Positions 1 to 60,783 of a stretch of 64,000 bases of DNA are shown here, in pieces. How positions within the stretch are numbered: position 1 is the stretch's first letter; each line of letters starts with the position of its first letter. Position numbers and translations under genes: made by a program. Origin of the DNA: Mizuhopecten yessoensis (Eukaryota). The stretch is taken from contig NW_018404202.1 in the NCBI RefSeq assembly GCF_002113885.1, positions 456,631 through 520,630 on the forward strand, in the 5' to 3' direction. The notes below the pieces were generated by a model, which had not been told where the DNA came from, did no database searches, and saw only the letters and a program-made list of their open reading frames with translations.

Positions 1-459
1 ACCTAGTGATAGGACCATACAGTATCTGTTGTACAAACCTAGTGATAGGACCATACATTATCTGTTGTACAAACCTAGTGATAGAACCATACAATACCTG
101 TTGTACATACCTAGTGATAAGACCATACAGTATCTGTTGTACAAACCTAGTGATAGGACCATACAGTTTCTGTTGTACAAACCTAGTGCTAGGACCATAC
201 AGTTTCTGTTGTACACACCTAGTGATAGAACCATACAGTTTCTGTTGTACATACCTAGTGATAGGACCATACAGTATCTGTTGTACAAACCTAGTGATAG
301 GACCATACAGTTTCTGTTGTACATACCTAGTGATAGGACCATACCGTATCTGTTGTACAAACCTAGTGATGGGACCATACAGTATCTGTTGTACAAACCT
401 AGTGATAGGACCATACAGTTTCTGTTGTACACACCTAGTGATAGGACCATACAGTATCT
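1..459. repeat. 36-bp minisatellite derived from the gene C exon 3 end and its donor
   Basis: Unit ACCTAGTGATAGGACCATACAGTATCTGTTGTACAA, at least 12 copies, continues off window. Confidence 0.95.
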
Positions 460-776
460 TATGTCAAACGGGTCTTTCTCCATGAGGAAGCTGACGTCTA
501 GCGTATCACCATTGTTGACATTCACATTTCCAACAATAAAACAGCCCTGGCTGACCGTCGTGTCCCCTCTGGTCAGCACGAGGCGACTGCCACAGTTGAT
601 ATAGTTCGGCTGAAGATCAAAGTGAGGGGACAAATGGATGATGGTGGAGGCTTCGTTATCCAGAGTTACGGTAGCTGTACATGAACACGTGGCAGGTTTA
701 GTCTGTCCCTCCGCCGTGTAAGTGTCAACAATCACCCGGTTCCCCTTGGCCTCGGAGCTGGTACACATGGAGGCCA
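435..776 (-). CDS. Receptor gene C exon 3, Cys-rich ectodomain (gene continues beyond window start)
   Basis: ttttgcctag acceptor, 342 nt phase 1-1; MC..RVIVDTY..CSC..P..CGSRL..C..YC pattern aligns with ectodomain exons at 33564-33929 and 52931-53287; donor lies inside the 36-bp array, so the exact end is uncertain. Confidence 0.8.
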
Positions 777-990
777 CTAGGCAAAATTAACACAAACACA
801 GCAAATATTAAATATGGAATTTCATATATAAATGTGATGGATATCACATAGGGAATCATGATCGATTTTAATGTCTTTGGTAAGGCGCAATTGAGTTGAA
901 CATCTGTTAATGCTTTGCATCATTCATCGGTTACATAACAAATGCATTAGACTAAAAATACTAAATATTTTTAAGTACTACACGCTTACT

Positions 991-2213
991 TCAGTGGAGC
1001 ATGGCCCGTGGCACTATGTAGAATGGGACATATACAGTGGGCAATGACCCGTGGCACTATGTAGGAGGGACATACACAGTGAACCATGGCCCATGGCACT
1101 ATGTAGGAGGGACATCTACAGTGAACCATGGCCCGTGGCACTATGTAGGAGGGACATATACAGTGGACCATGGCCCGTGGCACTATGTAGGAGGGACATA
1201 CACAGTGGAGCATGGCCCGTGGCACTATGTAGGAGGGACATATACAGTGGACCATGGCCCGTGGCACTATGTAGGAGGGACATGTACAGTGGAGCATGGC
1301 CCGTGGCACTATGTAGAAGGGACATGTACAGTGGAGCATGACCCGTGGCACTATGTAGGAGGGACATGTACAGTGGACCATGGCCCGTGGCACTATGTAG
1401 GAGGGACATACACAGTGGACCATGGCCCGTGGCACTATGTAGGAGGGACATACACAGTGGACCATGGCCCGTGGCACTATGTAGAAGGGACATGTACAGT
1501 AGAGCATGACCCGTGGCACTATGTAGGAGGGACATATACAGTGGGCCATGGCCCGTGGCACTATGTAGGAGGGACATACACAGTGAACCATAGCCCGTGG
1601 CACTATGTAGGAGGGACATACACAGTGGACCATGGCCCGTGGCACTATGTAGAAGGGACATGTACAGTAGAGCATGACCCGTGGCACTATGTAGGAGGGA
1701 CATACACAGTGAACCATAGCCCGTGGCACTATGTAGGAGGGACATACACAGTGAACCATAGCCCGTGGCACTATGTAGGAGGGACATACACAGTGGACCA
1801 TGGCCCGTGGCACTATGTAGGCGGGACATATACAGTGTACCGTGGCCCGTGGCACTATGTAGGCGGGACATATACAGTGTACCGTGGCCCGTGGCACTAT
1901 GTAGGAGGGACATATACGGTGGACCATGGCCCGTGGCACTATGTAGAAGGGACATGTACAGTAGAGCATGACCCGTGGCACTATGTAGGAGGGACATATA
2001 CAGTGTACCGTGGCCCGTGGCACTATGTAGGAGGGACATACACAGTGAACCATAGCCCGTGGCACTATGTAGGAGGGACATGTACAGTGGACCATGGCCC
2101 ATGGCACTAAATAGGAGGGACATACACAGTGGAGCATGGCCCGTGGCACTATGTAGAAGGGACATGTACAGTGGAGGATGACCCGTGGCACTATGTAGGA
2201 GGGACATGTACAG
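991..2213. repeat. 42-bp minisatellite (~29 copies)
   Basis: Unit CATGGCCCGTGGCACTATGTAGGAGGGACATACACAGTGGAC. Confidence 0.95.
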
Positions 2214-2247
2214 ATGCAGTTCACGAATAACTTGGAGTATAAGGCTG

Positions 2248-2936
2248 GGACCTAGATTTACATAGCTGGTGTCGTTTTGAACCAGATTTACATGGCTGGT
2301 GTCGTTTTGACCCAGATTGAAATGGCTGGTGTTGTTTTGACCTAGACTTAAATGGCTGGTGTCGTTTTGACCCAAATTTAAATGGCTGGTGTCGTTTTGA
2401 CCCAGATTTAAATGGCTGGTGTCGTTTTGACCCAGATTGAAATGGCTGGTGTTGGTTTGACCTAGATTTACATGGCTGGGGTCATTTTGACCCAGATTTA
2501 CATGGCTGGTGTCATTTTGGCCCAGATTTAAATGGATGGTGTTGTTTTGACCTATACTTAAATGGCTGGTGGTGTTTTGACCCAGATTGAAATGGCTGGT
2601 GTTGGTTTGACCTAGATTTAAATGGCTGGTGTTGTTTTGACCTAGATTTACATTGCTGGTGTCGTTTTGACCCAGATTTAAATGGCTGTTGTCGTTTTGA
2701 CCCAGATTTACATATATAGCTGGTGTCGTTTTGACATTGATTTACATAGCTGGTGTCGTTTTGAACCAGATTTAAATGGCTGGTGTTATTTTGGCCTAGA
2801 TTTAAATAGCTGTTGTCGTTTTGACCTAGATTTACATGACTGGGGTCGTTTTGACCTAGATTTACATGGCTGGTGTCGTTTTGACATTGATTTACATGGC
2901 TGGTGTCGTTTTGACCCAGATTTGCATTACTGGTGT
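2248..2936. repeat. 30-bp minisatellite
   Basis: Unit GACCCAGATTTAAATGGCTGGTGTCGTTTT. Confidence 0.93.
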
Positions 2937-5900
2937 AGTAACATGAGGTGTATTGTTGTGTTGTGTCTACTGTGTAACATGATGTGTATTGTTGTGTTGT
3001 GTCTACCGTGTAACATGAGGTGTATTGTTGTGTTGTGTCTACTGTGTAACATGAGATGTATTGTTGTGTTGTGACTACTATGTAACATGAGGTGAATTGT
3101 TGTATTGTGTCTACTGTGTCACATGAGGTGTATTGTTGTGTTGTGACTACCATGTAACATGAGGTGTATTGTTGTGTTGTGTCTACTGTGTAACATGAGG
3201 TGTATTGTTGTGTTGTGTCTACCGTGTAACATGAGGTGTATTGTTGTGTTGTGTCTACTGTGTAACATGAGATGTATTGTTGTGTTGTGACTACTATGTA
3301 ACATGAGGTGAATTGTTGTATTGTGTCTACTGTGTCACATGAGGTGTATTGTTGTGTTGTGACTACCATGTAACATGAGGTGTATTGTTGTGTTGTGTCT
3401 ACTGTGTAACATGAGGTGTATTGTTGTGTTGTGTCTACTGTGTAACATGAGGTGTATTGTTGTGTNNNNNNNNNNNNNNNNNNNNNNNNNNNNNNNNNNN
3501 NNNNNNNNTGTAACATGAGGTGTATTAATGTGTTGTGTCTACTGTGTAACATGAGGTGTATTGTTGTGTATACTGTGTAACATGAGGTGTATTGTTGTGT
3601 CTACTGTGTAACATGAGGTGCATTGTTGTGTTGTGTCTACTATGTAACATGAGGTGTATTAATGTGTTGTGTCTACTGTGTAACATGAGGTGTATTGTTG
3701 TGTCTACTGTGTAACATGAGGTGTATTGTTGTGTCTACTGTGTAACATGAGGTGCATTGTTGTGTTGTGTCTACTATGTAACATGATGTGTATTGTTGTG
3801 TTGTTCCTACTGTGTAACATGAGGTGTATTGTTGTGTTGTGTCTACTATGTAACATGACGTGTATTGTTGTGTTGTTCCTACTGTGTAACATGAGGTGTA
3901 TTGGTGTGTCTACTGTGTAACATGAGGTGAAATGTTGTGTCTACTGTGTAACATGAGATGTATTGGTGTGTTGTGTCTACTATGTAACATGAGGTGTTTT
4001 GTTGTGTTATGACTACTATGTAACATGAGGTGTATTCTTGTGTTGTGTCTACTGTGTAACATGAGATGTATTGTTGTGTTGTGTCTACTTTGTATCATGA
4101 GGTGTATTGTTGTGTTGTGACTACTATGTAACATGAGGTGTATTGTTGTGTTGTGTCTACTGTGTATCATGAGGTGTATTGTTGTGTTGTGACTACTATG
4201 TAACATGAGGTGTTTTGTTGTGTTGTGACTACTATGTAACATGAGGTGTATTGTTGTGTTGTGTATACTGTGTAACATGAGGTGTATTGTTGTGTTGTGA
4301 CTACTATGTAACATGAGGTGTTTTGTTGTGTTATGACTACTATGTAACATGAGGTGTATTGTTGTGTGGTGTATACTGTGTAACATGAGGTGTATTGTTG
4401 TGTTGTTACTACTGTGTAACATGAGGTGTATTGTTGTGTTGTGTCTACTGTGTAGAATGAGGTGTATTGTTGTGTCTACTGTGTAACATGATGTGTATTG
4501 TTGTGTTGTGTCTACTGTGTAACATGAGGTGTATTGTTCTGTCTGCTGTGTAACATGAGGTGTATTGTTGTGTTGTGTCTACTGTGTAATATGAAATGTA
4601 TTGTTGTGTGTACTGTGTCACATGAGGTGTATTGTTGTGTTGTGTCTACTGTGTAACATGAGGTTTATTGTTGTGTTGTGTCTACTGTGTAACATGAGAT
4701 GTATTGTTGTGTTGTGTCTACTGTGTAACATGAGATGTATTGTTCTGTCTACTGTGTAACATGAGGTGTATTGTTGTCTAGTGTCTACTGTGTAACATGA
4801 AATGTATTGTTGTGTGTACTGTGTAACATGAGGTGTATTGTTGTGTTGTGTGTACTGTGTAACATGAGGTGTATTGTTGTGTTTACTGTGTACCATGAGG
4901 TGTATTGTTGCGTTGTGTCTACTGTGTACCATGAGGTGTCTTGTTGTGTTGTGTCTACTGGGTAACATGAGGTGTACTGTTGTGTTGTGTCTACTGTGTA
5001 CCATGAGGTATATTGTTGTGTTGTGTCTACTGTGTAATCTACTGTGTAACATGAGATGTATTGTTCTGTCTACTGCGTAACATGAGGTGTATTGTTGTGT
5101 TGTGTCTACTGTGTAACATGAAATGTATTGTTGTGTGTACTGTGTAACATGAGGTGTATTGTTGTGTTGTGTCTACTGTGAAACATGAGGTGTATTGTTG
5201 TGTTGTGTCTACTGTGTAACATGAGGTGTATTGTTGTGTCTATTGTGTAACATGAGGTGTATTGTTGTGTTGTGTCTAATGTGTAACATGAGGTGTATTG
5301 TTGTGTTGTGTCTACTGTGTAACATGAGGTGTATTGTTGTGTCTACCGTGTAACATGAGGTGTATTGTTGTGTCCACTGTGTAACATGAGGTGTATTGTT
5401 GTCTCTTCTCTGTAACATGAGGTGTATTGTTGTGTCTCCTCTGTAACATGAGATGTATTGTTGTGTTGTGTCTACTCTGTAACATGAGATGTATTGTTGT
5501 GTTGTGTCTACTCTGTAACATGAGATGTATTGTTGTGTCTACTGTGTAACATGAGGTGAATTGTTGTGTTGTGTCTACTGTGTAACATGAGGTGTATTGT
5601 TGTGTCTACCGTGTAACATGAGGTGTATTGTTGTGTCCACTGTGTAACATGAGGTGTATTGTTGTGTCTACTGTGTAACATGAGATGTATTGTTGTGTTG
5701 TGTCTACTGTGTAACATGACATGAATTGTTGTGTTGTGTCTACTGTGTAACATGAGGTGTACTGTTGTGTTGTGTCTACTGTGTAACATGAGGTGTATTG
5801 TTTTGTCTTCTGTGTAACATGAGATGTATTGTTGTGTTGTGTCTACTTTGTAACATGAGGTGTATTGTTGTGTTGTGTCTACTGTGTAACATGAGATGTA

Positions 5901-6440
5901 TTGTTATGTTTTGTCTACTGTGTAACATGAGATGTATTGTTGTGTTGTGTCTACTGTGTAACATGAGGTGTATTGTTGTGTCTTCTCTGTAACATGAGGT
6001 GTATTGTTGTGTCTACCGTGTAACATGAGGTGTATTGTTGTGTCCACTGTGTAACATGAGGTGTATTGTTGTGTCTACCGTGTAACATGAGGTGTATTGT
6101 TGTGTCCACTGTGTAACATGAGGTGTATTGTTGTGTCTTCTCTGTAACATGAGGTGTATTGTTGTGTCTACTGTGTACCATGAGGTGTATTGTTGTGTCT
6201 ACTGTGTACCATGAGGTGTATTGTTGGGTTGTGTCTACTGTGTAACATGAGGTGTATTGTTGTGTCTTCTCTGTAACATGAGGTGTATTGTTGTGTCTAC
6301 TGTGTACCATGAGGTGTATTGTTGTGTCTACTGTGTACCATGAGGTGTATTGTTGGGTTGTGTCTACTGTGTAACATGAGGTGTACTGTTGTGTTGTGTC
6401 TACTGTGTAACATGAGATGTATTGTTGTGTGTACTGTGTA
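2937..6440. repeat. 36/31-bp minisatellite (~100 copies; N gap 3466-3508)
   Basis: Unit CTACTGTGTAACATGAGGTGTATTGTTGTG(TTGTG)T. Confidence 0.95.
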
Positions 6441-6879
6441 CCGTCGTAGTATCAGGACGGTGAACTCGTCACCAAATATCTGGGATTCCATGAAAACCTT
6501 GTTGCTTACAGTGTCCATGTACGGGTCTGAATTCCTGTAATACATACTCTTACCGCTGTGTTAGGGACCAGGTGATTTTATTCTGCCATCTCAAACTTTA
6601 TGCATTGTTACAAAGAGCGTCGGTTACATACAACCGAGGTATGGTAATTAGGGAGTCTCGCCGCTGTATTTATGATTGCCGAGAGTTCGTTGTATAGACC
6701 ATGTAAATCAATAGTGTACAGGGAAATGACAAAATACTCTGATATTGATTAATGCACAATTATAGAAAATGATAACCTGCTTCACCGCACCCGGTCTCCA
6801 ATTATGTTATTATATCTTCATTTATCGAATCAATTGAAGAGCTTGTATTTATACCTGTGTATTTACTTATCAGATGTCG

Positions 6880-7460
6880 GTCACATATTTCTGTCACTGG
6901 TACTGGTCAGACATTTCTGTGAGAGGTACTGGTTAGATATTTCTGTGAGTGATATTGGTCAGATGGTCAGATATTTCTGCGAGAGGTCCTAGTCAGATGG
7001 TTAAATCTTTCTGTTAGTGGTATAGTTCAGATGGTCAGGTATTTCTGTCAGAGGTATTTGTCAGATGGTCAGATATTTCTGTGGGTGGTATTGACCAGAT
7101 ATTTCTATGAGTCGTACTGGTTGGGTGGTCTTATATTTCTGTGATTAGTATAGGTCAGATGGTAAGATATTTCAGTGAGTGGTATTGGTCAGATTGTCAG
7201 ATATTTCTGGGAGTGGTATAGGTCAGACAGTCAGATTTATCTATGACAGGTATTGGTCAGATGGTCAGATATTTCTGTAAGTTTTAGTCGTCAGATGGTC
7301 AGATATTTCTGTGAGAGGTACTGGTCAGACGGTCAGATATTTTTATGAGGGGTATAGGTCAGAAGGTCATATATTTCTGAAAGTGTTAGTCGTCAGATGG
7401 TCAGATATTTCTGTGAGAGGTACTGGTCAAATGGTCAGATAGTTCTGTGAGAGGTATAGT
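6880..7460. repeat. Degenerate ~35-bp minisatellite
   Basis: GGTCAGATGGTCAGATATTTCTGTGAGAGGTACT variants. Confidence 0.85.
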
Positions 7461-7508
7461 TGTTTGCCCATGATAGAAAAATGTTAAAGTGACAATAACG
7501 ATCCATGC

Positions 7509-8948
7509 ACATGTCTCACTGGAGTGACAGGTACCACTCACAAACATGTCTCACTGGAGTGACAGGTACCACTAACACACATGTCTCACTGGAGTGACAG
7601 GTACCCCTCACACATATGTCTCACTGGAGTGACAGGTACCCCTCACACTCATGTCTCACTGGAGTGACTGGTACCACTCACACACATGTCTCACTGGAGT
7701 GACTGGTACCCCTCACACACATGTCTCACTTGAGTGACAGGTACCACTCACAAACATGTCTCACTGGAGTGACAGGTACCACTCACACACATGTCTCACT
7801 GAAGTGACAGGTACCACTCACACCCATGTCTCACTGGAGTGACAGGTACCACTCACACACATGTCTCACTGCAGTGGCAGGGACCCCTCACGCACATGTC
7901 TCACTGGAGTGACAGGTACCCCTCACGCACATGTCTCACTGGAGTGACAGGTACCCATCACACACATGTCTCACTGGAGTGACAGGTACCCATCACACAC
8001 ATGTCTCACTGGAGTGACAGCTACCACTCACACACATGTCTCACTGAAGTGACAGGTACCACTCACACACATGTCTCACTGGAATGACAGGTACCACTCA
8101 CACACATGTCTCACTGGAATGACAGGTACCACTCACACACATGTCTCACTGGAATGACAGGTACCACTCACACACATGTCTCACTGGAATGACAGGTACC
8201 ACTCACACACATGTCTCACTGGAATGACAGGTACCACTCACACACATGTCTCACTGGAGGGACAGGGAGCACTCACACACATGTCTCACTGGAGTGACAG
8301 GTACCCATCACACACATGTCTCACTGGAGTGACAGGTACCACTCACACACATGTCTCACTGGAATGACAGGTACCACTCACACACATGTCTCACTGGAAT
8401 GACAGGTACCACTCACACACATGTCTCACTGGAATGACAGGTACCACTCACACACATGTCTCACTGGAGGGACAGGGAGCACTCACACACATGTCTCACT
8501 GGAGTGACAGGTACCACTCACACACATGTCTCACTGAAGTGACAGGTACCACTCACACAGATGTCTTACTGGAGTGACTGGTACCCCTCACACGCATGTC
8601 TCACTGAAGTGACAGGTACCCCTCACACCCATGTCTCACTGGAGTGACTGGTACCCCTCACACACATGTCTTACTCGAGTGACTGGTACCCCTCACACAC
8701 ATGTCTCACTTGAGTGACAGGTACCACTCACAAACATGTCTCACTGGAGTGACAGGTACCACTCACACCCATGTCTCACTGGAGTGACAGCTACCACTCA
8801 CACACATGTCTCACTGAAGTGACAGGTACCACTCACACACATGTCTTACTGGAGTGACTGGTACCCCTCACACACATGTCTCACTGAAGTGACAGGTACC
8901 CCTCACACACATGTCTCACTGGAGTGACTGGTACCCCTCACACACATC
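7509..8948. repeat. 35-bp minisatellite with internal hairpin (~41 copies)
   Basis: Unit CATGTCTCACTGGAGTGACAGGTACCACTCACACA; TCACT/AGTGA stem. Confidence 0.95.
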
Positions 8949-9796: not shown

Positions 9797-9802
9797 GATT
9801 TT

Positions 9803-15848: not shown

Positions 15849-16366
15849 ATGGTGTGTATGAGTGCGAGTGGTGCGTGTGTGTTCATTTATATGCTATGTA
15901 ACATATATTTGAAAAATGTTTGAAAAATAAAAATAAAAGATACAAAAAAAAACTATGTAGTAAAAAAAAGGCGATATAGATTTATAAAGTTTGTGCTCCA
16001 TTTTGTTGTTGTTTGTTATGTAAATAATACACACAAGAAAATAAAGCAGTAGCTAGGATAGGTGACATGGAATAACGCCGACAAAGAGGCAACGGTTGAT
16101 AGAATATCGACCGACCTTGATTCAGACTACTGTATAGTATTACCTAGTAGGGGTAGGTAAACTGGGAACCCAGTCACGGAATCTCATCAATAACTTATGT
16201 CTTACAGCGCAAGCAAAATTACGGTTTTCGTGAAAGTACATATCATCGTTCTTTATTTGAACCTGTGGTGTGAAGTATCTGTCATAAGTTCTATATTATT
16301 TATTATATCTGGCAGAATATTGATACTCACACGAGATCTATACTAGTATATATCTAGTAATCTGTG

Positions 16367-18571
16367 GATACTGACAGTGTATTTAATACATGATACCTGT
16401 AATATCTGTCGGGTAGTATAAGAATACTGACATTGAATTTGATACATGATATGTGTAATATCTGTCGGGTAGTATAAGGATACTGACACTGAATTTGATA
16501 CATGGTATCTGTGATATCTGTCGGGTAGTATAAGGATCCTGACATTGAATTTGATACATGATACATGTAATATCTGTCGGGTAGTATAAGGATATTGACA
16601 TTGAATTTGATACATGATATGTGTAATATCTGTCGGGTAGTATAAGGATACTTACATTGAATTTGATACATGATATCTATAATATAGTCGTGTAGTATAA
16701 GAATACTGACATTGAATTTGATACATGGTATCTGTGATATCTGTCGGGTAGTATAAGGATACTGACATTGAATTTGATACATGAGATCTATAATATATGT
16801 CGGGTAGTATAAGGATACTGACATTGAATTTGATACATGATATCTGTAATATAGTCGGGTTGTATACGGATACTGACATTGAATTTGATACATGATATCT
16901 GTAATATCTGTCGGGTAGTATAAGGATACTGACAGTGTATTTGATACATGGTATCTGTAATATATGTCGTGTAGTATAAGGATACTGACAGTGTATTTGA
17001 TACATGGTATCTGTAATATAGTCGGGTTGTATACGGATACTGGCATTGAATTTGATACAAGATATCTGTAATATCTGTCGGGTAGTATAAGGATACTTAC
17101 ATGGAATTTGATACATGATACATGTATTATCTGTCGAGTAGTATAAGGATACTGACATTGAATTTGATACATGATACATGTAATATCTGTCGGGTAGTAT
17201 AAGGATACTGACATTGAATTTGATACATGATATCTGTAATATATGTCGGGTAGTATAAGGATACTGACATTGAATTTGATACATGATATCTGTAATATAT
17301 GTCGGGTAGTATAAGGATACTGACATTGAATTTGATACATGATATCTGTAATATATGTCGGGTAGTATAAGGATACTGACATTGAATTTGATACATGATA
17401 TCTGTAATATATGTCGGGTAGTATAAGGATACTGACATTGAATTTGATACATGATATCTGTAATATATGTCGGGTAGTATAAGGATACTGACATTGAATT
17501 TGATACATGATATCTGTAATATATGTCGGGTAGTATAAGGATACTGACATTGAATTTGATACATGATATCTGTAATATATGTCGGGTAGTATAAGGATAC
17601 TGACATTGAATTTGATACATGATATCTGTAATATATGTCGGGTAGTATAAGGATACTGACATTGAATTTGATACATGATATCTGTAATATAGGTCGGGTA
17701 GTATAAGGATACTGACATTGAATTTGATACATGATATCTGTAATATATGTCGGGTAGTATAAGGATACTGACATTGAATTTGATACATGATATCTGTAAT
17801 ATATGTCGGGTAGTATAAGGATACTGACATTGAATTTGATACATGATATCTGTAATATATGTCGGGTAGTATAAGGATACTGACATTGAATTTGATACAT
17901 GATATCTGTAATATATGTCGGGTAGTATAAGGATACTGACATTGTATTTGATACATGGTATCTATAATATATGTCGGGTAGTATAAGGATACTGATATTG
18001 AATTTGATACATGATATCTGTAATATCTGTCGGGTAGTATAAGGATACTGACATTGAATTTGATACATGATATCTGTAATATATGTCGGGTAGTATAAGG
18101 ATACTGACATTGAATTTGATACATGATATCTGTAATATATGTCGGGTAGTATAAGGATACTGACATTGAATTTGATACATGATATCTGTAATATATGTCG
18201 GGTAGTATAAGGATACTGACATTGAATTTGATACATGATATCTGTAATATATGTCGGGTAGTATAAGGATACTGACATTGAATTTGATACATGATATCTG
18301 TAATATAGTCGGGTAGTATAAGGATACTGACATTAAATTTGATACATGATATCTATAATATAGTCGGGTAGTATAAGGATACTGCTGTTGAATTTGATAC
18401 ATGATATCTGTAATATATGTCGGGTAGTATAAGGATACTGACATTGAATTTGATACATGATATCTGTAATATCTGTCGGGTAGTATACGGATACTGACAT
18501 TGAATTTGATACATGATATCTGTAATATATGTCGGGTAGTATAAGGATACTGACAGTGTATTTGATACATG
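16367..18571. repeat. 56-bp minisatellite (~39 copies)
   Basis: Unit GGATACTGACATTGAATTTGATACATGATATCTGTAATATATGTCGGGTAGTATAA. Confidence 0.95.
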
Positions 18572-27316: not shown

Positions 27317-27884
27317 TCAAACACTGGTATCTACTTCGGCGTATACGACGTTATCAGTGTCTACTTTAGGTTTAGGACTGACAGGAGGTGGGCGTGACTT
27401 CGAACGTGACTGTGGGCGTGACGCCGAACGTGACTGTGGGCGTGACGTTCTGTCCTGGACACTCACTTCCGCGTACACTAACCCGTCCGGGTTTTGATAC
27501 CGCGAGGGTCGATTGTCATCTATCTCACCCGTCTTATTTTGATTCTTTGATTTGTTAACGACAGCATAAACATCCCCCTGTGGAGATTCCTCTAGATCTA
27601 ATTTCTCCGTACCAGTAGCAGCCATAGTAGAACGTGTCTCTGGTTTTTGTACCTGCGCGTACATGTCCCCGGTCCCCGTAACGATGTAGTTGGTGTCCGG
27701 ATATCGTGGTCCGGCCGATACGTAGAGCGAGTTGTGAGTTATAGTGTCCCCGTCATTATTCACGTACCTTTTGTTGGTAGAGGTGTTAGCGTACGGATGG
27801 ATGTCATCAGAAAGGCCTCCATTTGTATTACCGTAGGACAGGTCTCCATTGTCTGAAGTCTGCTTATCGTCTGGTTTTCTTTTC
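27317..27884 (-). CDS. Receptor gene A cytoplasmic exon with ITIM-consensus motifs (LVYAEV, VVYAEV), ends DTSV*
   Basis: aaatag acceptor in phase 2, RKRK stop-transfer, open frame to TGA at 27317; paralogous to 49778-50378. Confidence 0.88.
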
Positions 27885-28578: not shown

Positions 28579-28657
28579 CGAATGATGACGACGATGACGA
28601 CGATGATAATGATCAGTAACAACCCTCCACCGCCCGCTGCTCCAGCAATTACCCCAA
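28579..28657 (-). CDS. Receptor gene A transmembrane exon (VGVIAGAAGGGGLLLIIIIVVIVVIIR)
   Basis: ttccag acceptor, CG|GTAGGT donor, 79 nt phase 1-2; hydrophobic helix homologous to 50645-50726. Confidence 0.85.
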
Positions 28658-32832: not shown

Positions 32833-33132
32833 CGTCACTCCCTGTCTGTTCCCCTGTCGTCGCTGTATCACCTCCTGTGGAACTGACCGATGGTGGATGC
32901 GTAGGGGTCGGAGTGGATGTTGTCTGGCTAACGTGTGTCGATGTTAAAGGTTTTGTCGTTGTTGTTGTCGTCGGTGTCGTTGTTGTTGTCGTCGGTGTCG
33001 TTGTTGTTGTCGTCGGTGTCGTTGTTGTTGTCGTCGTCGACGATGTCGATGTTGTTGAAGTTTTAGTTGAGGATCTGTTGGATTTACCCTGTTGTTCGTT
33101 ACAGGTAACGATGATGTCTAAATTTGTACTTC
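32833..33132 (-). CDS. Receptor gene A exon 4, last ectodomain Cys + Thr-rich mucin stalk
   Basis: ttctgtag acceptor, G|GTAAGT donor, 300 nt phase 1-1; IIVTC followed by repeated PTTTTTT. Confidence 0.85.
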
Positions 33133-33563: not shown

Positions 33564-33929
33564 CTTGTAAAGAAACTAATATACAGTGCCCTGATATCCA
33601 CGATGTACTGACGTCAGCCCGTGATAGCGTCAGTGTCAACATGTCTGATGTGCTGAAATTGTTTGTCAAAGTGGCAGGGATTGGGTTGCAATCAGTTTTA
33701 GTAAAACTACTTGATTTAGTAGAATTGATCACAAGTATACTCCCACAGTTCTGTAATGGTGCTACACGCGGGTATTCCTCCACTACGACTGATGTTGTTG
33801 TAGATGATGCTGATTCTGTACCCAGGGTAACGGTACAGGTACAGCTGTATACATCCAGGCCTCCAGTACCCCAAGTGTCTATCACCACACGTGTGTTTTT
33901 CAGTGTTCCACTTTTACACATCGTTTTAA
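33564..33929 (-). CDS. Receptor gene A exon 3, Cys-rich ectodomain
   Basis: ctacag acceptor, G|GTATAC donor, 366 nt phase 1-1 within ORF 33367..33972; MCKSG..RVVIDTW..CTC..AP..CGSIL..C..WISGHCIL. Confidence 0.85.
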
Positions 33930-34385
33930 CTGTAGTTACAAATAATACGCATGTTAATCTACTCAATGCCAAATTGATAGCGAGGAATGAGTATTTTAGA
34001 GAATATATCGCCCACGATGCTTTCTAATGTAAATGACAACGAATTACACAAAAAAATGGCGATTGGAGGATTTGGAAGGATAATGTAATCCATTTTCACA
34101 CCTTTTCTGAGCTAAATCTGAAAGCATTTTGTTTTTAAAATCAACGCACTATAAAAAGAAAATTATGGAAAGATTTCAAAAACGCAAAAAAACTTGAGAA
34201 GATAATTTTAACTTTATAATCCTAAATAATTACTCAAAATGCAACATCACGGTCAATGTCAGTTGCTCTTATACAGAATGTCATATTATCTAAATCATAT
34301 TTACTTACTTAGCATCAGTTGAGGTGTTGCCCAACAAATGAACAAATACGTTATATACTTAAAATTTGATATAGTGATACATTAC

Positions 34386-34439
34386 CATGGAAAAAGTTGT
34401 CCAGTTCAGTTCGGTCAGTACATGCCGTCGTATTGATAC
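34386..34439 (-). CDS. Receptor gene A exon 2 (Cys micro-exon GINTTACTDRTELDNFFH)
   Basis: ttatag acceptor, G|GTAATG donor, 54 nt phase 1-1; same length as and clearly homologous to gene B exon 2 (GINSTICTDK). Confidence 0.8.
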
Positions 34440-35493: not shown

Positions 35494-35569
35494 CTTCAAA
35501 GTACATGTGTATGATCAGCAACATGTATGTAAGTCCCAGTAGGCTGAAGCTGTCTCGTCTGCCTCTCAT
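35494..35569 (-). CDS. Receptor gene A exon 1 (signal peptide MRGRRDSFSLLGLTYMLLIIHMYFE)
   Basis: ATG, basic n-region then hydrophobic core, 76 nt, phase-1 donor G|GTAAGA. Confidence 0.75.
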
Positions 35570-43700: not shown

Positions 43701-44180
43701 TACATTCGTCCACTAATTGTGTTAGGTTGTATGTATCGATTATGTTACATAAGTGACCCTTGTGAGGATGATTTTGAAGTAGGTTTACATTGAAATCTCC
43801 TGTTATAACGATATCGAAAACTCCTGTGTTAAAAGATCGATCAATTGATTGCTCAATTTTATTCCAGAGTTGGACATTTGAATTTAGAGGTCTGTAAAAT
43901 GTTCCAAAAAAAAAAGGACTTTTTAAAAGAAATTTAAATCCAAACAGTTTCAACACCATCCACGTTAAGTTAAGATCATTTCGAGTTTTAGTAATGAATT
44001 CATTGGATACGTACACTGAAATCCCTCCCCCTACTCTATCATTTCGATAAAAACATATAGGGCTGTGATAACTAGGAATGTTTAAAGAGATATCATTATC
44101 TGATTCGTGAAGCCACGTCTCAGTAAAGGACAGGATGCTACATTCTCGTAACTCTGTACGTAATATATCCAGGAGATTTG
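40715..44180 (-). mobile_element. Degenerate CR1-type LINE (APE endonuclease + RT), interrupted by a gap/insert at about 42046-42570
   Basis: ILSFTETWL, GTFYRP, ITGDFN, WKRANVIPVHKKG..NYRPISL, FYDISKAFDRVWH, QGSIIGPLLFLVYIN, HLGLFFSSNGSW, HARLRMECSSLNGHL; multiple frameshifts; AATAAA-containing 3' end near 40715. Confidence 0.9.
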
Positions 44181-44607
44181 AAAATCAGAAGTTGCTTACC
44201 ATATTAATTTCACTGAAATATGGGTTTTTTCGAAAATAATANNNNNNNNNNNNNNNNNNNNNNNNNNNNNNNNNNNNNNNNNNNNNNNNNNNNNNNNNNN
44301 NNNNNNNNNNNNNNNNNNNNNNNNNNNNNNNNNNNNNNNNNNNNNNNNNNNNNNNNNNNNNNNNNNNNNNNNNAATTGATAGAAAATGTTTTAATGATTG
44401 GTGTGTGATTTGACCAGTAACTATAAGGTCCCAATCTGTGTTAGCTTGGAAGACAACAGTTCAGAAATAATTGTACTTAAAAAGTCTAAATGGTTTATGT
44501 AGTTGTTACCGAGATCGTTTGTTAAAATACGCCATTAACAATCAAAACTGTTTAATATTCACAGATTCATATATATATGAAAAGTAAATGGAGACGAGCC
44601 GGTAACA

Positions 44608-49777: not shown

Positions 49778-50378
49778 TTACACACCAGTGTCAACCTCAG
49801 AGTAAATGACTCTGTCAGCGTTAGATGTAGGCTTTGGTCTGACAGGGGGACGTGACCGTGGTCGTGACGTTGTATCATCCACCTCGGCGTACATTAAACC
49901 TTCCTGGTTTTTATATCGAGAGGGGCGTTTATTGTCATCGTTATGCAATTCGTCTTTTGTATTATTTGCCCCTTTCTTTGGTTTATTAACTACGGCATAG
50001 ACGTCACCAGAGGGAGTTGTCTGTGAATGTTCTGTATGGTTCGAATGTTCCGTCTCAGAATGTGTATGCTTGTTTGGTTTATTAACTACGGCATAGACGT
50101 CACCAGAGGGAGTTGTCTGTGAATGTTCTGTATGGTTCGACTGTTCCGTCTCAGAATGTGTATGCTTGTTTGGTTTCTGAACCTGTGCGTATACGTCACC
50201 GGTCTCCGTGACGATATGGTTGGTATCCGGATCTCGAGGTCCGGCCGATTCGTAGAGGGAGTTGTGAGTTATTGTGTCCACACCTTCATTGTGATAGAAT
50301 TTGGGTGTTGTGACAGCGTAAGGTTGGATGTCAACGGCAAAATTACCCTCTGTCCTCTTCACATCTGCACCTTTTTTC
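49778..50378 (-). CDS. Receptor gene B cytoplasmic exon with ITIM-consensus motifs (LMYAEV, VIYSEV), ends DTGV*
   Basis: ttttatatcag acceptor phase 2, within ORF 49778..50392; shares DTITHNSLY.SAGPR.PDTN.IVT.TGD.YAQVQKP with gene A. Confidence 0.88.
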
Positions 50379-50644: not shown

Positions 50645-50726
50645 CTTATTATTATAACTACTATCACAATGATAAAGATGATGACTAAAACAGCACCGCC
50701 ACCAGCAGCTCCGGCAATGACCCCAA
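50645..50726 (-). CDS. Receptor gene B transmembrane exon (VGVIAGAAGGGAVLVIIFIIVIVVIIIR)
   Basis: tttcag acceptor, AG|GTAGGT donor, 82 nt phase 1-2. Confidence 0.87.
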
Positions 50727-51588
50727 CTGAAACACATCATAGATAAATACAGACGTAAGTAGAATCAACTTCAAAGTGACACTTTGTTAAACTCTAGCGT
50801 TACATAGCTTCAAAAGCCAAACATGGTCAGTATTCTTATACAATCAGTATGTTCTGTCAGAATCGTCTTACAATTTAAACCAGCAGAAAATAGAAACTGT
50901 GTATAAATAACAGTAAAATACAAAGCAATAACTGTAAAACGTACAGAAACATTTTCTTTCAGAATTGTAACAAACATTACATTTCATTTAAGACCGATTC
51001 ACCCAAAGTTGTCAAACGAACACCAAATTACGCACACATTGCACCAAGGCCACAGAGATCAACAGCAGTTTTGGAAAAGTACGTGACCATATCACTCTGG
51101 TCGTCACTTCTGTCGAAGTGAAACCATTACTCGTCCGAGAGCAAGATACGCGCCGAATCCCGTTTAGTAAAGCGGGTTTTTTCCTGCACCTTGTAATCCA
51201 AGACTTGCAACACTGAAGATGACGTTTTTGAAGAACAAAGCGAATAACTGGAAACTGAACGATTGTTCCGTCCATGCAGGCGATTGCTAACAGTTCTTGG
51301 TTTGATTCTCCGTTATCCATGTATTCACCTTTTTACATTCAAACCTGCAGTTATGAAGTGGTTCCACATTTGTACAACCCAGATGTAAACGTACTGACGT
51401 ACTGACGTCACACGCGGACGTCCTCACCTTGGGCGGTCCCTTGTGTTAGCAGACAATTTTAAACGTCTCCACAAGGCATGAATAGTGGTATGATGCACAC
51501 AAAAACGTCTAGCAACATCATTTTAACAGCCTGAATCATTATAACCGCTTGGTTTCTGACATTTACACTCATTAGAAGCAAAGCTTAC

Positions 51589-51849: not shown

Positions 51850-52414
51850 CTGTTAGTATATCAGTAGGTATTACATATTTCCTATTGCCTATATCAGTAG
51901 TTATTACATACTTCCTATTGCCTATATCAGTAGGTATTACATATTTCCTATTGCCTATATCAGTAGGTATTATATATTTCCTATTGCCTTTATCAGTAGG
52001 TATTACATACTACCTATTGCCTATATCAGTAGTTATTACATATTTCCTACAGAATATATCAAAGATGTTACATACTACCTATTTCCTGTATCAGTAATTA
52101 TAATATATTCCCTATTGCCTATATCAGTAGGTATTACATATTTCCTATTGCCTATATCAGTAGGTATTATATATTTCCTATTGCCTTTATCAGTAGGTAT
52201 TACATACTACCTATTGTCTATATCAGTAGGTATTACATACTACCTATTGCCTATATCAGTAGGTATGACATACTACCTATTGCCTATATCAGTAGTTATT
52301 ACATACTTCCTATTGCCTATATCAGTAGGTATTACATACTCCCTATTGCCTATATCAGTAGGTATTACATACTACCTATTGCCTATATCAGTAGTTATTA
52401 CATACTTCCTATTG
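51850..52414. repeat. 33-bp minisatellite abutting the end of gene B exon 4
   Basis: Unit CCTATTGCCTATATCAGTAGGTATTACATATTT. Confidence 0.92.
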
Positions 52415-52420
52415 ACTTAT

Positions 52421-52606
52421 CCTTTACGTAGTTGTATCCGCCATTTACATCACCACCATTGTCTGTAATGTTTGTAACGGTCTGCACTGAACTGGAGCTA
52501 GGGGTCGTTATCGTCGTCGTTGCAGGGGTCGTTTTCGTTGTAGGGGTCGAAGCAGAAGAAGCCCCCAATTCGCCCGCGTCATCACACGTAACCGTTATAT
52601 TTACAC
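52421..52606 (-). CDS. Receptor gene B exon 4, last ectodomain Cys + Ser/Thr stalk (3' end uncertain)
   Basis: ttccag acceptor phase 1; VNITVTCDDAG..STPTTKTTPATTTITTPSSSS; donor either non-canonical G|ATAAGT (exon end 52421) or weak GT donors (exon end 52457 or 52454). Confidence 0.7.
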
Positions 52607-52930: not shown

Positions 52931-53287
52931 CTGTTCTAATAAGTATACAGTACCCAGATTGCCACTGTATGTTGTTATTGACTTTGGATAAAGTTATATT
53001 TAACAGTTCACTGCTGGCAAAATCACTGATGATATCACCAGTAATCCGTGTGCATTGATATTCAGTATAAGTATTAGTCGGATGTCTGTTAAATCTAAGG
53101 ATGCTTCCACAATCAGACGCCGGTGCTGTTCGAGAATAAGGTCCAGTTTGTAAGTTGACAGGACCTGTGTTAGTCCCACTAAGACTAACTGTACATCGAC
53201 AACTGTCGTAGTCTAACACTCCTGTGTCGTACGTATCTACCACCACACGTCCAGATGTCAGTGATCCATTCCTACACATCGGCAACA
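52931..53287 (-). CDS. Receptor gene B exon 3, Cys-rich ectodomain
   Basis: ttacag acceptor, G|GTGAGT donor, 357 nt phase 1-1; MCRNG..RVVVDTY..CRC..AP..CGSIL..C..WQSGYCIL. Confidence 0.87.
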
Positions 53288-53566: not shown

Positions 53567-53680
53567 ATAACTATCATGTTGATAACTATCATGTTGATAA
53601 CCATCATGTTAATAACTATCATATTGATAACTATCATGTTAATAACTATCATGTTAATAACTATCATGTTGATAACTATC
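53567..53680. repeat. 15-bp minisatellite
   Basis: GATAACTATCATGTT, about 7 copies. Confidence 0.9.
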
Positions 53681-55314: not shown

Positions 55315-55368
55315 CGTTAGTGAAACCGTCCGAATTAGCTTTATCAGTGCATATAGTTGAGTTGATGC
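55315..55368 (-). CDS. Receptor gene B exon 2 (Cys micro-exon GINSTICTDKANSDGFTN)
   Basis: tttctttcag acceptor, G|GTATGA donor, 54 nt phase 1-1; homologous to gene A exon 2. Confidence 0.8.
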
Positions 55369-55736: not shown

Positions 55737-55806
55737 CTTGATGATAGAAGCACGTCACTACCAATATATATAAACGTTTATATGATGTTTCCCTCCCGTC
55801 CCACAT
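55737..55806 (-). CDS. Receptor gene B exon 1 (signal peptide MWDGRETSYKRLYILVVTCFYHQ)
   Basis: ATG at 55806, 70 nt, phase-1 donor G|GTAAGT; resembles gene A exon 1. Confidence 0.72.
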
Positions 55807-57044: not shown

Positions 57045-57096
57045 ATGAAGCTATGGGACACTGTCTCGGTTTGGACGGCTATCACTGTATACAGAG
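57045..57096 (+). CDS. Receptor gene D first coding exon (signal-like MKLWDTVSVWTAITVYR)
   Basis: acaATG just after a ctacag acceptor; 52 nt, phase-1 donor G|GTATGT; in frame with the 57988 exon; signal peptide only moderately hydrophobic. Confidence 0.55.
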
Positions 57097-57161
57097 GTAT
57101 GTACAAAACAGCAAAATAAACATGTCTATTAAACATTCCTTCAGGTTGGTAAGTATATGAA

Positions 57162-57593
57162 TTATGAGAAGTTTTTTTTTTACACAACCATTAACATTTT
57201 CTATGTGACGTTTCGATGACTAGTACGTTATGTACACTGTCACCTTCATCAGACAAATGACCAGTGAAGCGTATGCACACAAAGGTGTAAAATGTGTACG
57301 AGTTGTCCATAAAATCGATGTCGATTTCGGCTACGAGTTGTTGTATATGTACCGAAATGACTCCATTCAGCTACGCTTTGTTAACACTTGGTAGCTGAAT
57401 TGAGTCATTTCGTTACATATATATATAACAACTGGACATCGATTTTATGGACACCTCGTACACATTTTACACCCTTGTGTGAATACGCTTCATTGGTTAT
57501 TTATCTGATGAACGTGACAGTGTACATACCGTACTAGTCATCGAAACGTCACATAGACAATTGTATTGGCTGTGTAAAGGGAACTTCTCATAA
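57162..57593. mobile_element. ~430-bp palindromic MITE/foldback element in a gene D intron
   Basis: Arms TTATGAGAAGTT...CTATGTGACGTTTCGATGACTAGTACG... pair with ...CGTACTAGTCATCGAAACGTCACATAG...AACTTCTCATAA around a ~16-nt loop near 57375-57390. Confidence 0.8.
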
Positions 57594-57987
57594 GTAAAAC
57601 AAACAATGTCGACTGCATGGACTGAACACACTTGTGGGTCAATTTGAAAACTGATGACATTTGTTGAAATACTTGTATATTGGTTCTATATTACAATAGG
57701 TCCTTTTCATCTTCGGCCTTTCAAATATATCACTGTGTTAATTTTGTACGAAATAATATTAAACCAAAACTGGGAAATGTCTGTAAGATGTGAATGTCCC
57801 TGCTCCCCTCCAAAAAGTAACGGTGGCACTGACGTTCACCTTGACGTCCTGCAACAGTGTTTCATCTGTTAAGAATGTTCGCTTAAGCGACAACACTGAA
57901 TTTGGATGAGACAGGCAGCCAGATACAATATAAGGATCAACAATCTGACATAATCAACTTCTAATACATATAATCTTTACGTTTTAG

Positions 57988-58386
57988 CATCGGTCGTATC
58001 ATCAAGCTCAACTACAACGAACGCATTTACAACACAAACCAGCACATCGACATCCGTCTACACAACAACTGAACCGTTCACAACCACAACTCAACCCATC
58101 ACAACTACAACTACTGAACCCTTCACAACCACAACTCAACCCATCACAACTACAACAGAACTCTTTACTACGACAACATCACCCTTCACAACTACAACTA
58201 ATAGAGAAACATCCGTCACTCTCCCTACCGTAACGTCCACAGACACTACCACAGGAACAACTGTTATACCAACAACAAACATCTTTACTGGGACGAGCAC
58301 GTCACACGTCACAGTACCGTCTACTTCCGGGACAATCATTACAACGGTGTCATCACCCTCTTGTCCACCATACTCATTCCCATACG
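57988..58386 (+). CDS. Receptor gene D Thr/Ser-rich mucin exon
   Basis: gttttag acceptor, G|GTACGT donor, 399 nt phase 1-1 open frame (TTTEPFTTTTQPITTTT...CPPYSFPY); absent from the ORF track on +. Confidence 0.8.
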
Positions 58387-58777
58387 GTACGTATTCTATT
58401 CCATATATATACATATATAAACTACTTGCTCTATAAACGTATTTTGGATGCATTATTCGGTTATTAGGAGTTCTTTCTTAAAACGATTTTCTAACATGAC
58501 GTGTTACCATAGGATTCAGGACCTAGAACTTAGTTTCATCACCCGTTTCTTTACGGGGTTCAGGATGGCTTCCCTTACGTTTTGGTTTCTGCTTTGTTCT
58601 TGTGGTTGATTCATTTTTAAGACTTAGAATTCATATTTTGCTCGTAAAAGACAAGATACATGTATATTCTCTATTTTACTTACAACTTTACAAATATGTT
58701 CTGGACAATCAAACACATGCTATAACTAAGGATGGTTCCGTACACTAGTAAACATGACGTTTATGGTTATGTTACAG

Positions 58778-58856
58778 TCGCCGTTGTTGTCCCTATTGTG
58801 GTAACCTTACTGGTGGTGCTATTGGCGACCGGGGCCAACGTGGTTCTGTACAGACG
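58778..58856 (+). CDS. Receptor gene D transmembrane exon (VAVVVPIVVTLLVVLLATGANVVLYRR)
   Basis: gttacag acceptor, CG|GTAAGT donor, 79 nt phase 1-2, same phase pattern as the TM exons of A and B. Confidence 0.82.
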
Positions 58857-59630
58857 GTAAGTAACGAGGATATGTAAACACAACTTGTATCACGTCATAT
58901 TGTGGTAACCTTACTGGTGGTGCTACTGGCGACCGGGGCCTACGTGATTCTGTACAGACGATAAGTAACGAGGATTTGTAAACACAACTTGTATTACGTC
59001 ATATTGTGGTAACCTTACTGGTGGTGCTACTGGCGACCGGGGCCTACGTGGTTTTGTACAGACGGTAAGTAACGAGGATATGTAAACACAACTTGTATCA
59101 CGTCATATTGTGGTAACCTTACTGGGGGTGCTACTGACTACCGGGGCCAACCTGATTCTGTACAGACGGTAAGTAACGAGGTTATGTATACACAACTTGT
59201 GCCACGTCATAGTGTGGTAACCTTACAGGGGGTGCTACTGGCGACCGGGGCCAACGTGATTCTGTACAGACGGTTAGTAACGAGGATATGTTAACACAAC
59301 TTGTATCACGTCATATTGTGGTACCCTTACTGGTGGTGCTACTGGCGACCGGGGCCAACGTGATTCTGTACAGACGATAAGTAACGAGGATTTGTAAACA
59401 CAACTTGTATCACGTCATATTGTGGTAACCTTACTGGTGGTGCTACTGACTACCGGGGCCAACCTGATTCTGTACAGACGGTAAGTAACGAGGTTATGTA
59501 TACACAACTTGTGCCACGTCATAGTGTGGTAACCTTACAGGGGGTGCTACTGGCGACCGGGGCCAACGTGATTCTGTACAGACGGTTAGTAACGAGGATA
59601 TGTATACACAACTTGTGTCACGTCATATTG
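58794..59630 (+). repeat. 104-bp x8 tandem amplification of the gene D TM exon 3' part and donor
   Basis: Units start at 58794, 58898, 59002, 59106, 59210, 59314, 59418, 59522. Confidence 0.95.
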
Positions 59631-59731
59631 GAAATGTTGATGTTATATAGATGTTGAGTATCAGCACGAGACATAGGAAGTATTGATTTCATACAAACGT
59701 TAAATATCGTTACAAAGATACAAATTTATAT

Positions 59732-59894
59732 TTAAGCATTGAACTGCTTTCAGTCGGCATTCCTAGGCAATATGAATGCCAACTGGACAACGGCAAATTC
59801 AATGAAGCGCGCTAGCGCTTCATGTTAGATTTGCCTTTGTCAAGTTGGAATTCATTTTGGCTATGAATGCTTACTGAAAGCAGTTCAATACTTA
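59732..59894. mobile_element. ~160-bp palindromic MITE-like hairpin in the last intron of gene D
   Basis: TAAGCATTGAACTGCTTTCAGT...ATGAAGCGC / GCGCTTCAT...ACTGAAAGCAGTTCAATACTTA, TA at both ends. Confidence 0.75.
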
Positions 59895-60632
59895 CATTTA
59901 CGATTTTTGGAATCTGTTAATCTCATAGAAAATTTGATTGCATTTACTATTATTCAGCAATAGTTTAAATAATGTATGTATCGTGTATCCTTGCTCAATA
60001 AATAGAAAAGCCATCGCCAAGTGAGGGTCATTGGTATCCAACGTAACAATTATGACGTCACAATAATGATGACGTCAACAATCGGTCCAGGCATTCATAG
60101 CCTATATGAATGTCAACTTAAATTGGTAGGGTTATATACGTAGTGGCAATGCCATACGATGGTAAATATTTAAGAATGGTTGCTATTGTATCATGTAAGC
60201 TATCTGTCAGTTTATACGGCACATGGACATCTTTTTATGTGGATTAGTGGGGGTAGAATTCGGTATTATATTTTGGTATTTCGTCAATTACACTTCTTTA
60301 ACAATGTGAAGTCCAATACGTACTGCGTGTTGACTCACTATTGTCACTACACAAAATACGTTTTATATTTATTTCCATCCTTATACTGGACAACTAATTC
60401 TTAAACGTGGCGTCTCATTACTGAACATTTCTAAACAAATGGTTTTACGATCTCTTATAGATGTTTTGGATGCATATCTAAACGTTTTACAACAAAATGT
60501 GAAAAGGGGCAAAAACTGTCCGATTTTCATTTCTTGAAAATGTGTTCGTTGGTAAAAAAAAAAAAAAAAAAAAAAAAACTACATGTACACGTCTAGAAAT
60601 GTACACCCTAATCTTGTCTTTACATTTTGTAG

Positions 60633-60783
60633 ACGTCTCGCCCTGATACGAGAAACGAAAAATGTTGACGATGTCATGACGCCGACCCCTGCAACGTACG
60701 AAAGCCTTGACGTCAACCGACGAGAAAATCCCTCCGAAATGTACACTGTACTGGAGGGAGAACATGTCTACATTAACACTTAG
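60633..60783 (+). CDS. Receptor gene D cytoplasmic exon with ITAM-like YESL-x11-YTVL and terminal YINT*
   Basis: ttttgtag acceptor phase 2 with CTAAT branch-like site upstream; RLALIRETKNVDDVMTPTPATYESLDVNRRENPSEMYTVLEGEHVYINT*. Confidence 0.8.

Follow-up and report, generated by a model that had tools for sequence, protein, structure and literature searches.

A scallop family of type I receptors with CUB-like heads and two alternative tyrosine-motif tails: candidate paired-type receptors in Mizuhopecten yessoensis

Gene organization of the window

The DNA analysed was a 64,000-nucleotide (nt) stretch of Mizuhopecten yessoensis scaffold NEDP02000875.1, hereafter the window, which carries the genes C, A and B on the minus strand and the gene D on the plus strand. 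These genes belong to a family of type I glycoproteins that consist of a signal peptide, an eight-cysteine head, an O-glycosylated mucin stalk, one transmembrane (TM) helix and a disordered, tyrosine-rich tail. Full-length family members each carried one of two unrelated, conserved TM-plus-tail modules, and genes with different modules were found to have closely similar heads within one genome. In both structure and evolution, the sequences of the family support a reading as paired-type receptors.

Models of A and B were obtained by a script that threaded RefSeq proteins through the minus strand of the window. A was XP_021339047.1 (P0077), of 480 amino acids (aa), and B was XP_021339061.1 (P0078; also OWF54811.1, P0074), of 454 aa; all are exactly encoded by the window, which rules out a source species other than M. 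yessoensis, and each gene consisted of six GT-AG exons. Both genes had the same exon plan (signal, 54-nt cysteine micro-exon, eight-cysteine head, mucin, TM and tail) and identical intron phases (1-1-1-1-2), which agreed with the phase-matched paralogues proposed in an initial annotation made from the sequence. The exons of A, B and C were as follows.

35494..35569, minus strand: A exon 1, with the start codon and signal peptide (exact mapping of XP_021339047.1)
34386..34439, minus strand: A cysteine micro-exon, 54 nt, with the first of the eight cysteines (exact mapping)
33564..33929, minus strand: A head exon, CUB-like (exact mapping)
32833..33132, minus strand: A mucin-stalk exon, with the eighth cysteine at its start (exact mapping)
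28579..28657, minus strand: A TM exon, of the glycine-rich long-tail type (exact mapping)
27317..27884, minus strand: A long tail exon, with seven conserved tyrosine motifs including two matches to the immunoreceptor tyrosine-based inhibitory motif (ITIM), a PxxP stretch and a T-x-V C-terminus
55737..55806, minus strand: B exon 1, coding part; its transcript extends to 55920 or beyond (mapping and X2 RNA contig)
55315..55368, minus strand: B cysteine micro-exon (mapping, and both flanking joints in RNA)
52931..53287, minus strand: B head exon, CUB-like (mapping; 91.7% nt identity to the LOC110452986 head exon)
52406..52606, minus strand: B mucin-stalk exon (mapping; an X2 contig runs into it)
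50645..50726, minus strand: B TM exon (mapping)
49778..50378, minus strand: B long tail exon, with an in-frame 96-bp duplication (mapping)
435..776, minus strand: C head exon, eight-cysteine, CUB-like, phase 1-1 (splice sites, frame, and alignment with A and B)

The first two joints of B (53287/55315 and 55367/55736) were present in X1 and X2 RNA contigs and in raw X21 RNA-seq reads, and continuity from the head exon to the mucin exon was seen in one X2 contig. The tail exon of B contained a tandem duplication of 96 bp at 49977-50176 (2.1 copies, 99% identical), by which the conserved tyrosine motif GDVYAVVNK was doubled in frame.

The C head exon (776-435) was intact, kept the family cysteines and was 40% identical to the transcript-derived P0012. 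A homology search of the window gave no match for the signal and micro-exons of C, for which there were pattern-based candidates only (12539-12488 and 9680-9630). The proposal of C as a third paralogue stood for an intact head exon of phase 1-1 with the family cysteines; its upstream exons lacked a homology match, and the remainder of the gene is putative or falls outside the window. A 36-bp array of 12.8 copies (1-459) repeats the last 24 nt of the C head exon together with its donor, and the frame is open throughout.

Four N gaps lie in the window: at 3466-3508, within a 36-bp satellite upstream of the C head exon; at 18997-19069, between C and A; and at 42046-42153 and 44242-44373, between A and B amid retroelement remnants. 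Genes A, B and D are free of gaps in both exons and introns, so the reading frames are unaffected; given the gaps, the true spacing and, strictly, the linkage of C, A and B are not guaranteed. The order B to A on one strand, in the same orientation, was also found in Ylistrum balloti (L001), and the A and B orthologues of Pecten maximus have consecutive accession numbers on one chromosome.

The cluster had been described as hidden, but A, B and D are already in the RefSeq annotation as uncharacterised or misnamed proteins. Database names on the family included 'cell wall integrity and stress response component 2-like', 'mucin-5AC-like' and 'activating signal cointegrator 1 complex subunit 2 homolog', all of them misleading. 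The family is annotated at the gene level but unrecognised. In literature searches, neither the genes nor their gene and protein accessions turned up in any paper, and nothing relevant appeared on ITIM or ITAM (immunoreceptor tyrosine-based activation motif) paired receptors in bivalves or on CUB domains combined with immunoreceptor motifs in molluscs. Three proteins of a 455,769-bp M. yessoensis scaffold (P0008, P0045 and P0046), which RefSeq lists as isoforms of 'mucin-5AC-like' and 'location of vulva defective 1-like', appear to result from read-through that joins two or three adjacent family genes; a signal-like start, a head, a TM and a tail recur in every unit.

Sequence and predicted structure of the head

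The head is encoded across three exons; eight of its cysteines are conserved, and a single acidic residue is invariant. A profile built from the head exons of A, B and C was searched against 1.84 billion representative proteins (E <= 0.001) and matched only 42, six of which were repetitive, unrelated-looking sequences. The remaining 36 included transcript contigs and several short matches; all named sources among them were bivalves, mostly Mizuhopecten, Pecten, Ylistrum and Argopecten, with one oyster (Saccostrea echinata).

The structure of the P0043 head, which is 88% identical to that of B, was predicted with AlphaFold using 34 aligned family heads. The model had a pLDDT (predicted local distance difference test) score of 90.5 and a pTM (predicted template modelling) score of 0.86. 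In a comparison by an exhaustive structural aligner, the top matches were CUB domains: Kremen (Z 8.6-8.8), spermadhesins (8.2-8.6) and MASP (8.0-8.1), aligned over about 105 residues. Further CUB-containing matches were neuropilin, TSG-6, Neto2 and cubilin, and CUB domains made up most of the top 30 matches (Z 7-8.8, about 100-107 residues aligned, root-mean-square deviation 2.8-3.2). A Foldseek search of the predicted head against the PDB gave only low-TM noise (viral capsids, BcsB), and a profile search against PDB sequences gave nothing for the head.

No Pfam family reached threshold for any exon or for any of the 34 heads, CUB and Ig families included; one family member had a weak match to CUB_CDCP1_1 (E 0.021). 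The canonical CUB domain has a four-cysteine pattern and a calcium-binding acidic triad, and the family head showed neither. Since CUB domains led the fold matches but no Pfam model was reached, the predicted head is called a beta-sandwich that is CUB-like at the level of the fold only. Ig domains were absent from the leading fold matches. The head is not Ig, in line with the non-Ig ectodomain proposed in the initial annotation; UniProt automatic names for members include both 'CUB domain-containing' and 'Ig-like domain-containing'.

Two transmembrane and tail modules

The long module was carried by A and B, by the orthologues of both in P. maximus and Y. balloti, and by KP79_PYT06692 and other members. 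It consisted of a glycine-rich TM and a tail of about 190-200 residues with seven conserved tyrosine motifs, a proline-rich PxxP stretch and a T-x-V end. The short module was found in D, P0043, P0044, P0052, P0020 and P0049, with P0048 more distant. Its TM was highly conserved and contained proline, threonine and asparagine, and its tail of about 50-60 residues contained YxSL, a second tyrosine 10-11 residues further on and, usually, a following YxN. Two tyrosines were invariant in all nine long tails, and two in all seven short tails and in a head-less P. maximus orthologue.

Two ITIM matches were present in each of the A and B tails (LVYAEV and VVYAEV in A; LMYAEV and VIYSEV in B), as had been noted from the sequence. 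They are the last two tyrosine motifs of the long tail, and they fitted the consensus (I/V/L/S)-x-Y-x-x-(I/V/L) in 6/6 A/B-type tails (A, B and four orthologues from P. maximus and Y. balloti), that is, in three scallop genera. In shuffled tails, the probability of two ITIM matches by chance was 0.016-0.045. Between A and B, identity was 37% in the head exon and 59% in the TM and tail, so the ectodomains had indeed diverged more than the TM and tail.

In the short tails, both tyrosines and the spacing of 10-11 residues were kept in 8/8. The ITAM consensus YxxL/I-x6-12-YxxL/I was present in three of the eight examined (D, P0020 and P0048) and absent from P0043, P0044 and P0049 (YxxM), P0052 (YxxT) and the P. 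maximus D orthologue (YDVV). The first short-tail motif (VHYDSL and similar) also fitted the ITIM consensus in the six headed members. The labels inhibitory and activating are therefore read from the motifs.

A head-less short-tail gene

D was found to be a spliced gene with a four-exon model of 226 aa, the same length as the RefSeq product called at 57045-61889. Its exons were as follows.

57045..57096, plus strand: D exon 1, with the start codon and a family-type signal-like peptide (joint 57096/57988 in an X1 contig and one X21 read)
57988..58386, plus strand: D mucin exon, spliced straight to exon 1 (RNA joints)
58778..58856, plus strand: D TM exon, of the short-tail type (joint 58386/58778 in an X1 contig)
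60633..60783, plus strand: D short tail exon, with YESL-x11-YTVL, then YINT and the stop codon (predicted donor 58856 and acceptor 60633, frame)

Both RNA joints of D were GT..AG. RNA mapping, the check suggested in the initial annotation, recovered the first three joints of B and the first two of D. The YxxL-x11-YxxL arrangement predicted for D was found as YESL-x11-YTVL.

A search for a head exon on the plus strand of the window found none for D, and no micro-exon was found either. P. maximus has a head-less D orthologue of 259 aa that lies head-to-head with the B orthologue, as D does in the window; it was 75% identical to D in the TM and 65-66% in the tail, which contained YESL, a second tyrosine 10 residues further on (YDVV) and an extra YENM. 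That D is a decaying pseudogene was rejected, since D is spliced in RNA and its head-less orthologue is conserved in P. maximus; for the same reasons D is a conserved head-less short-tail chain and not debris. Candidate roles for it are adaptor, decoy or stalk-only receptor.

Two further arrays were seen at D. A 104-bp array of eight copies (58794-59630), in the intron after the TM exon, repeats the 3' part of that exon and its donor, and a 49-bp array of 8.7 copies (60738-61163) carries the last 15 codons and the stop codon. Together with the array at 1-459, these are three minisatellites seeded from exon ends of family genes, and a potential splice donor is present in each copy of the 36-bp (C) and 104-bp (D) arrays. 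RNA coverage of a stretch of D intron 1 (57079-57675) was extremely high in each of the four runs, the contig depths adding up to as much as about 14,000, and variant contigs, back-joins and loose ends were numerous there. This stretch is probably a transcribed repeat family; copies of about 77% identity were found in introns of the partner genes described below (L002:10706-10925 and L003:13802-13924).

Partner genes with similar heads

The partner of B was LOC110452986 (XP_021357449.1, P0043), a short-tail gene whose head was 88% (aa) and 91.7% (nt) identical to that of B. Because the window is from M. yessoensis, P0043 is a paralogue of B in the same genome. The partner of A was XP_021339902.1 (P0044), also with a short tail, whose head was 78% (aa) and 85% (nt) identical to that of A. 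Both partners lie on scaffolds other than that of the window. KP79_PYT06692 (long tail) and KP79_PYT06690 (short tail) are adjacent genes with sister heads (support 100/99). Homology between the extracellular parts of partners, as expected of paired receptors, was thus found in all three pairs (88%, 78% and the sister KP79 heads).

The initial annotation had set A and B against D as the pair; D is head-less, and the true partners of A and B lie elsewhere. Its wider proposal of an inhibitory and activating family held as regards clustered, diversified type I non-Ig receptors with two kinds of tyrosine-motif tail, but the pairing of A and B with D was dropped.

The short-tail cluster at a scaffold end (L002, NEDP02003514.1) had the order B-like to A-like on one strand, as the long-tail cluster has in the window. 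This parallel order suggests that the cluster was duplicated as a whole long ago and that the heads were homogenised later.

Nine differences were seen in RNA aligned to the B head exon, and eight of the nine were the bases of the partner gene. The samples with B transcripts (X1, X2 and X21) therefore also contain transcripts of the partner, and polymorphism or editing as the source of these variants was largely rejected, since they are paralogue bases. Two partner bases were present in all X21 reads covering those sites, near B's own exon junction; these may represent converted B alleles.

Exon-limited similarity and phylogenetic analysis

In the comparison of B with its partner gene, alignment was possible in the micro-exon (81.5%) and the head exon alone, and the introns could not be aligned. 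At each border of the head exon, identity dropped to the background level over about 10 nt. The long- and short-tail B-like genes of P. maximus lie 2.2 Mb apart on one chromosome, and their sole common block was 387 bp long with 91.2% identity.

A maximum likelihood tree was constructed from 27 heads. Partners were sisters within each species, and heads grouped by species and not by tail; for 8-9 rows, the tail type had to change eight times along the tree. Constraining either the B-like heads with short tails or those with long tails to one group, with the groups named after the tree had been seen, was rejected (delta lnL about 98; p of the approximately unbiased test about 1e-54 to 1e-58). 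Heads were about 57% identical (aa) between species and 88% identical between partners.

The ratio of nonsynonymous to synonymous divergence (dN/dS) per exon, a measurement suggested in the initial annotation, was calculated for head exons. It was 0.26 for B and P0043, with a dS of 0.21, and 0.4-0.65 for whole A-like head exons; positive selection at the whole-exon level was thus not supported (0.26-0.65).

The 4.6-kb orphan contig L008 (NEDP02082505.1) was colinear with gene A, introns included (window 31928-35440). Introns 4 and 3 were 98.4% and 93.7% identical to those of A, but the head and mucin exons only 88.8% and 89.3%, so that these exons were more diverged than the introns. The L008 head exon was a mosaic over 25 informative sites per half: the 5' half agreed with the short-tail partner at 17 against 8 sites, and the 3' half agreed with A at 17 against 8. 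L008 may be a highly divergent allele of A, or it may be a recent copy with a converted head. From these alignments we infer exon-limited gene conversion as the probable cause of the similarity between partner heads.

Repeats between and within the family genes

Much of the sequence that separates the family genes, and of that inside them, consists of kilobase-scale satellites with units of 31-56 bp (986-8947, 16366-18571 and 24383-26063), and the GC skew is strongly biased over 2-6 kb. Remnants of retroelement open reading frames lie at 30386-31604 (A intron 4) and at 41414-44016 (between A and B, holding two of the N gaps), and a Tc1/mariner-like remnant lies at 51015-51522, in B intron 4.

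Comparison with known receptor systems

Paired receptors are defined by homologous ectodomains of the partners, overlapping expression and opposite signalling roles (PMC5701461). Siglec-11/-16 and the CEACAM paired receptors also show similarity limited to the ectodomain and grouping by species (PMC5701461, PMC2832619, PMC4042635). The presence of partners in the same genome, the restriction of their similarity to the head exon and the grouping of heads by species make the analogy with paired receptors much stronger.

Like the scallop genes, the vertebrate paired receptors (Siglec-5/-14, Siglec-11/-16, CEACAM, KIR, LILR and SIRP) have similar partner ectodomains with different signalling ends, occur in tandem clusters and include an inhibitory-type member with two C-terminal ITIM-consensus motifs. 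The scallop family differs in that the head is a CUB-like eight-cysteine domain on a mucin stalk and not an Ig or C-type lectin domain, and in that the alternative partner has a tyrosine tail of its own and not a charged TM that borrows DAP12 or FcR-gamma. Scallop partners may also be separated by megabases (2.2 Mb in P. maximus), and they occur in a mollusc. The scallop family appears, from its sequences, to be a non-Ig, molluscan variant of the paired-receptor design.

Diversified type I receptors also form clusters in other invertebrates, namely the Alr genes of Hydractinia and the histocompatibility-linked receptors of Botryllus, and some of these have ITIM- or ITAM-like tails. Unlike the CUB-like scallop head, the ectodomains there are Ig-like or of other folds; no allorecognition phenotype is known in scallops, and polymorphism in the scallop family rests on one divergent contig, L008. 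CDCP1 and DCBLD2 are type I proteins with CUB-type heads and phosphotyrosine-docking tails, whereas the scallop family shows no relationship to them in sequence, has no Pfam CUB match at threshold and has a different cysteine pattern, a single head on a mucin stalk and paired genes.

D and its P. maximus orthologue are like chains of the DAP10/DAP12 type in being head-less with a short tyrosine tail, and the Pecten YENM is a DAP10-type YxNM; D differs in keeping a mucin stalk of about 130 aa and in lacking a charged TM residue. The x11 spacing of D lies within the range of the ITAM of Draper (Draper/CED-1/MEGF10), YxxI/L-x6-12-YxxI/L, which binds the Syk-like kinase Shark, Draper having further functional tyrosines (PMC6219719). 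Draper has an EGF-repeat head and is a single gene with no partner bearing an alternative tail, whereas in the scallop short tail the residue at the second +3 position is often M, T or V.

Interpretation and alternative explanations

The explanation that we lean towards, with modest confidence, is a scallop (Pectinidae) family of paired-type receptors with CUB-like heads, two exchangeable tails, heads matched by conversion and putatively opposed outputs. Both partners would bind the same ligand, and ligand-driven clustering would lead to phosphorylation of the tails by a Src-family kinase. The ITIMs of the long tail would then recruit an SH2 phosphatase or Csk-type inhibitors, and the short tail would recruit activators of the Syk/Shark, Grb2/Drk or PI3K type. 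The response of the cell would be set by the balance of the two partners, as in vertebrate paired receptors, and exon-limited gene conversion would keep the head exons of the partners alike. The shared ligand, phosphorylation, SH2 effectors and opposite outputs are what we infer from this design, and a role in immunity, in haemocytes or in allorecognition is likewise putative.

Several observations weigh against this explanation. The whole-exon dN/dS was below 1, so diversifying selection is not demonstrated. A canonical ITAM was present in only 3/8 short tails, and the first motif of that tail fitted the ITIM in the six headed members; all tyrosine motifs also fitted the generic sorting signal YxxPhi, and the TMs of short-tail members had no charged residue, unlike those of most vertebrate activating partners. 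Whether a tail inhibits or activates is judged from short motifs. The Z scores of 8-9 in the fold comparison barely exceed the stated background of the aligner (7-8), and co-expression of the partners was seen at the level of whole RNA samples only (X1, X2 and X21).

The family might instead consist of adhesion or scaffold receptors like CDCP1 or DCBLD2; each of the two tails would bring together its own set of kinases and adaptors, in epithelial, neural or reproductive cells, with no opposing balance. The CUB-like fold, the weak CDCP1 CUB match of one member, the YxN, PxxP and PDZ-type T-x-V end of the long tail, which are typical of scaffolds, and the first short-tail tyrosine, whose fit to the ITIM blurs the opposition, would all suit such receptors. 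Yet exon-limited matching of heads in two species is the pattern expected for one ligand with different outputs, and to our knowledge it is not known for CDCP1 or DCBLD2; the family is, moreover, lineage-restricted, tandemly expanded and fast-evolving between species (about 57% against 88% between partners). We regard this alternative as unlikely, though worth keeping in mind. Endocytic or scavenger-type receptors, in which YxxV and YxxL would be AP-2 sorting signals and the tails would set different trafficking routes, are an improbable explanation. Every conserved tyrosine motif (YAQV, YAVV, YAEV, YSEV, YDSL) fits YxxPhi, and type I proteins with a mucin stalk are common among scavenger receptors, but the conservation exceeds that signal (invariant flanks in YAQVQK and YAVVNK, and position -2 in each of the two final motifs), and seven motifs in one tail would be excessive for sorting.

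The similarity of the heads could have another origin, namely recent and independent shuffling or duplication of head exons onto existing tail genes in each species, with no ongoing conversion or selection for a shared ligand. Only one exon is common to the partners, the domain exons are all of phase 1-1 and can therefore be freely shuffled, and a dS of about 0.2 fits a single, fairly recent event. Such an event would have had to produce near-equal identities (91.7% and 91.2%) independently in two genera, and the similar micro-exon (81.5%), the mosaic head exon of L008, the partner-type bases in transcripts with B's own exon junction and the parallel cluster order, which argues for old clusters that were later homogenised, all speak against it. 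The chances of this origin seem slight to us.

Significance

We know of no defined inhibitory receptors in bivalve immunology. Paired receptors with co-evolving heads have been regarded as a hallmark of innate immune regulation in vertebrates, and the same design in a mollusc, built on an unrelated domain, would show a convergent solution (like heads, two tails, homogenised head exons and a head-less chain). It is possible, and we put this forward tentatively, that the scallop family is the first paired inhibitory and activating system in a lophotrochozoan, with CUB-like heads that co-evolve by conversion and with divergent alleles (L008), driven by pathogens or by self/non-self recognition and arisen independently of vertebrates. 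The analysis corrects the misleading database names of family members, and the partner pairs, exon coordinates and conserved tyrosines would provide a concrete gene set for bivalve immunology.

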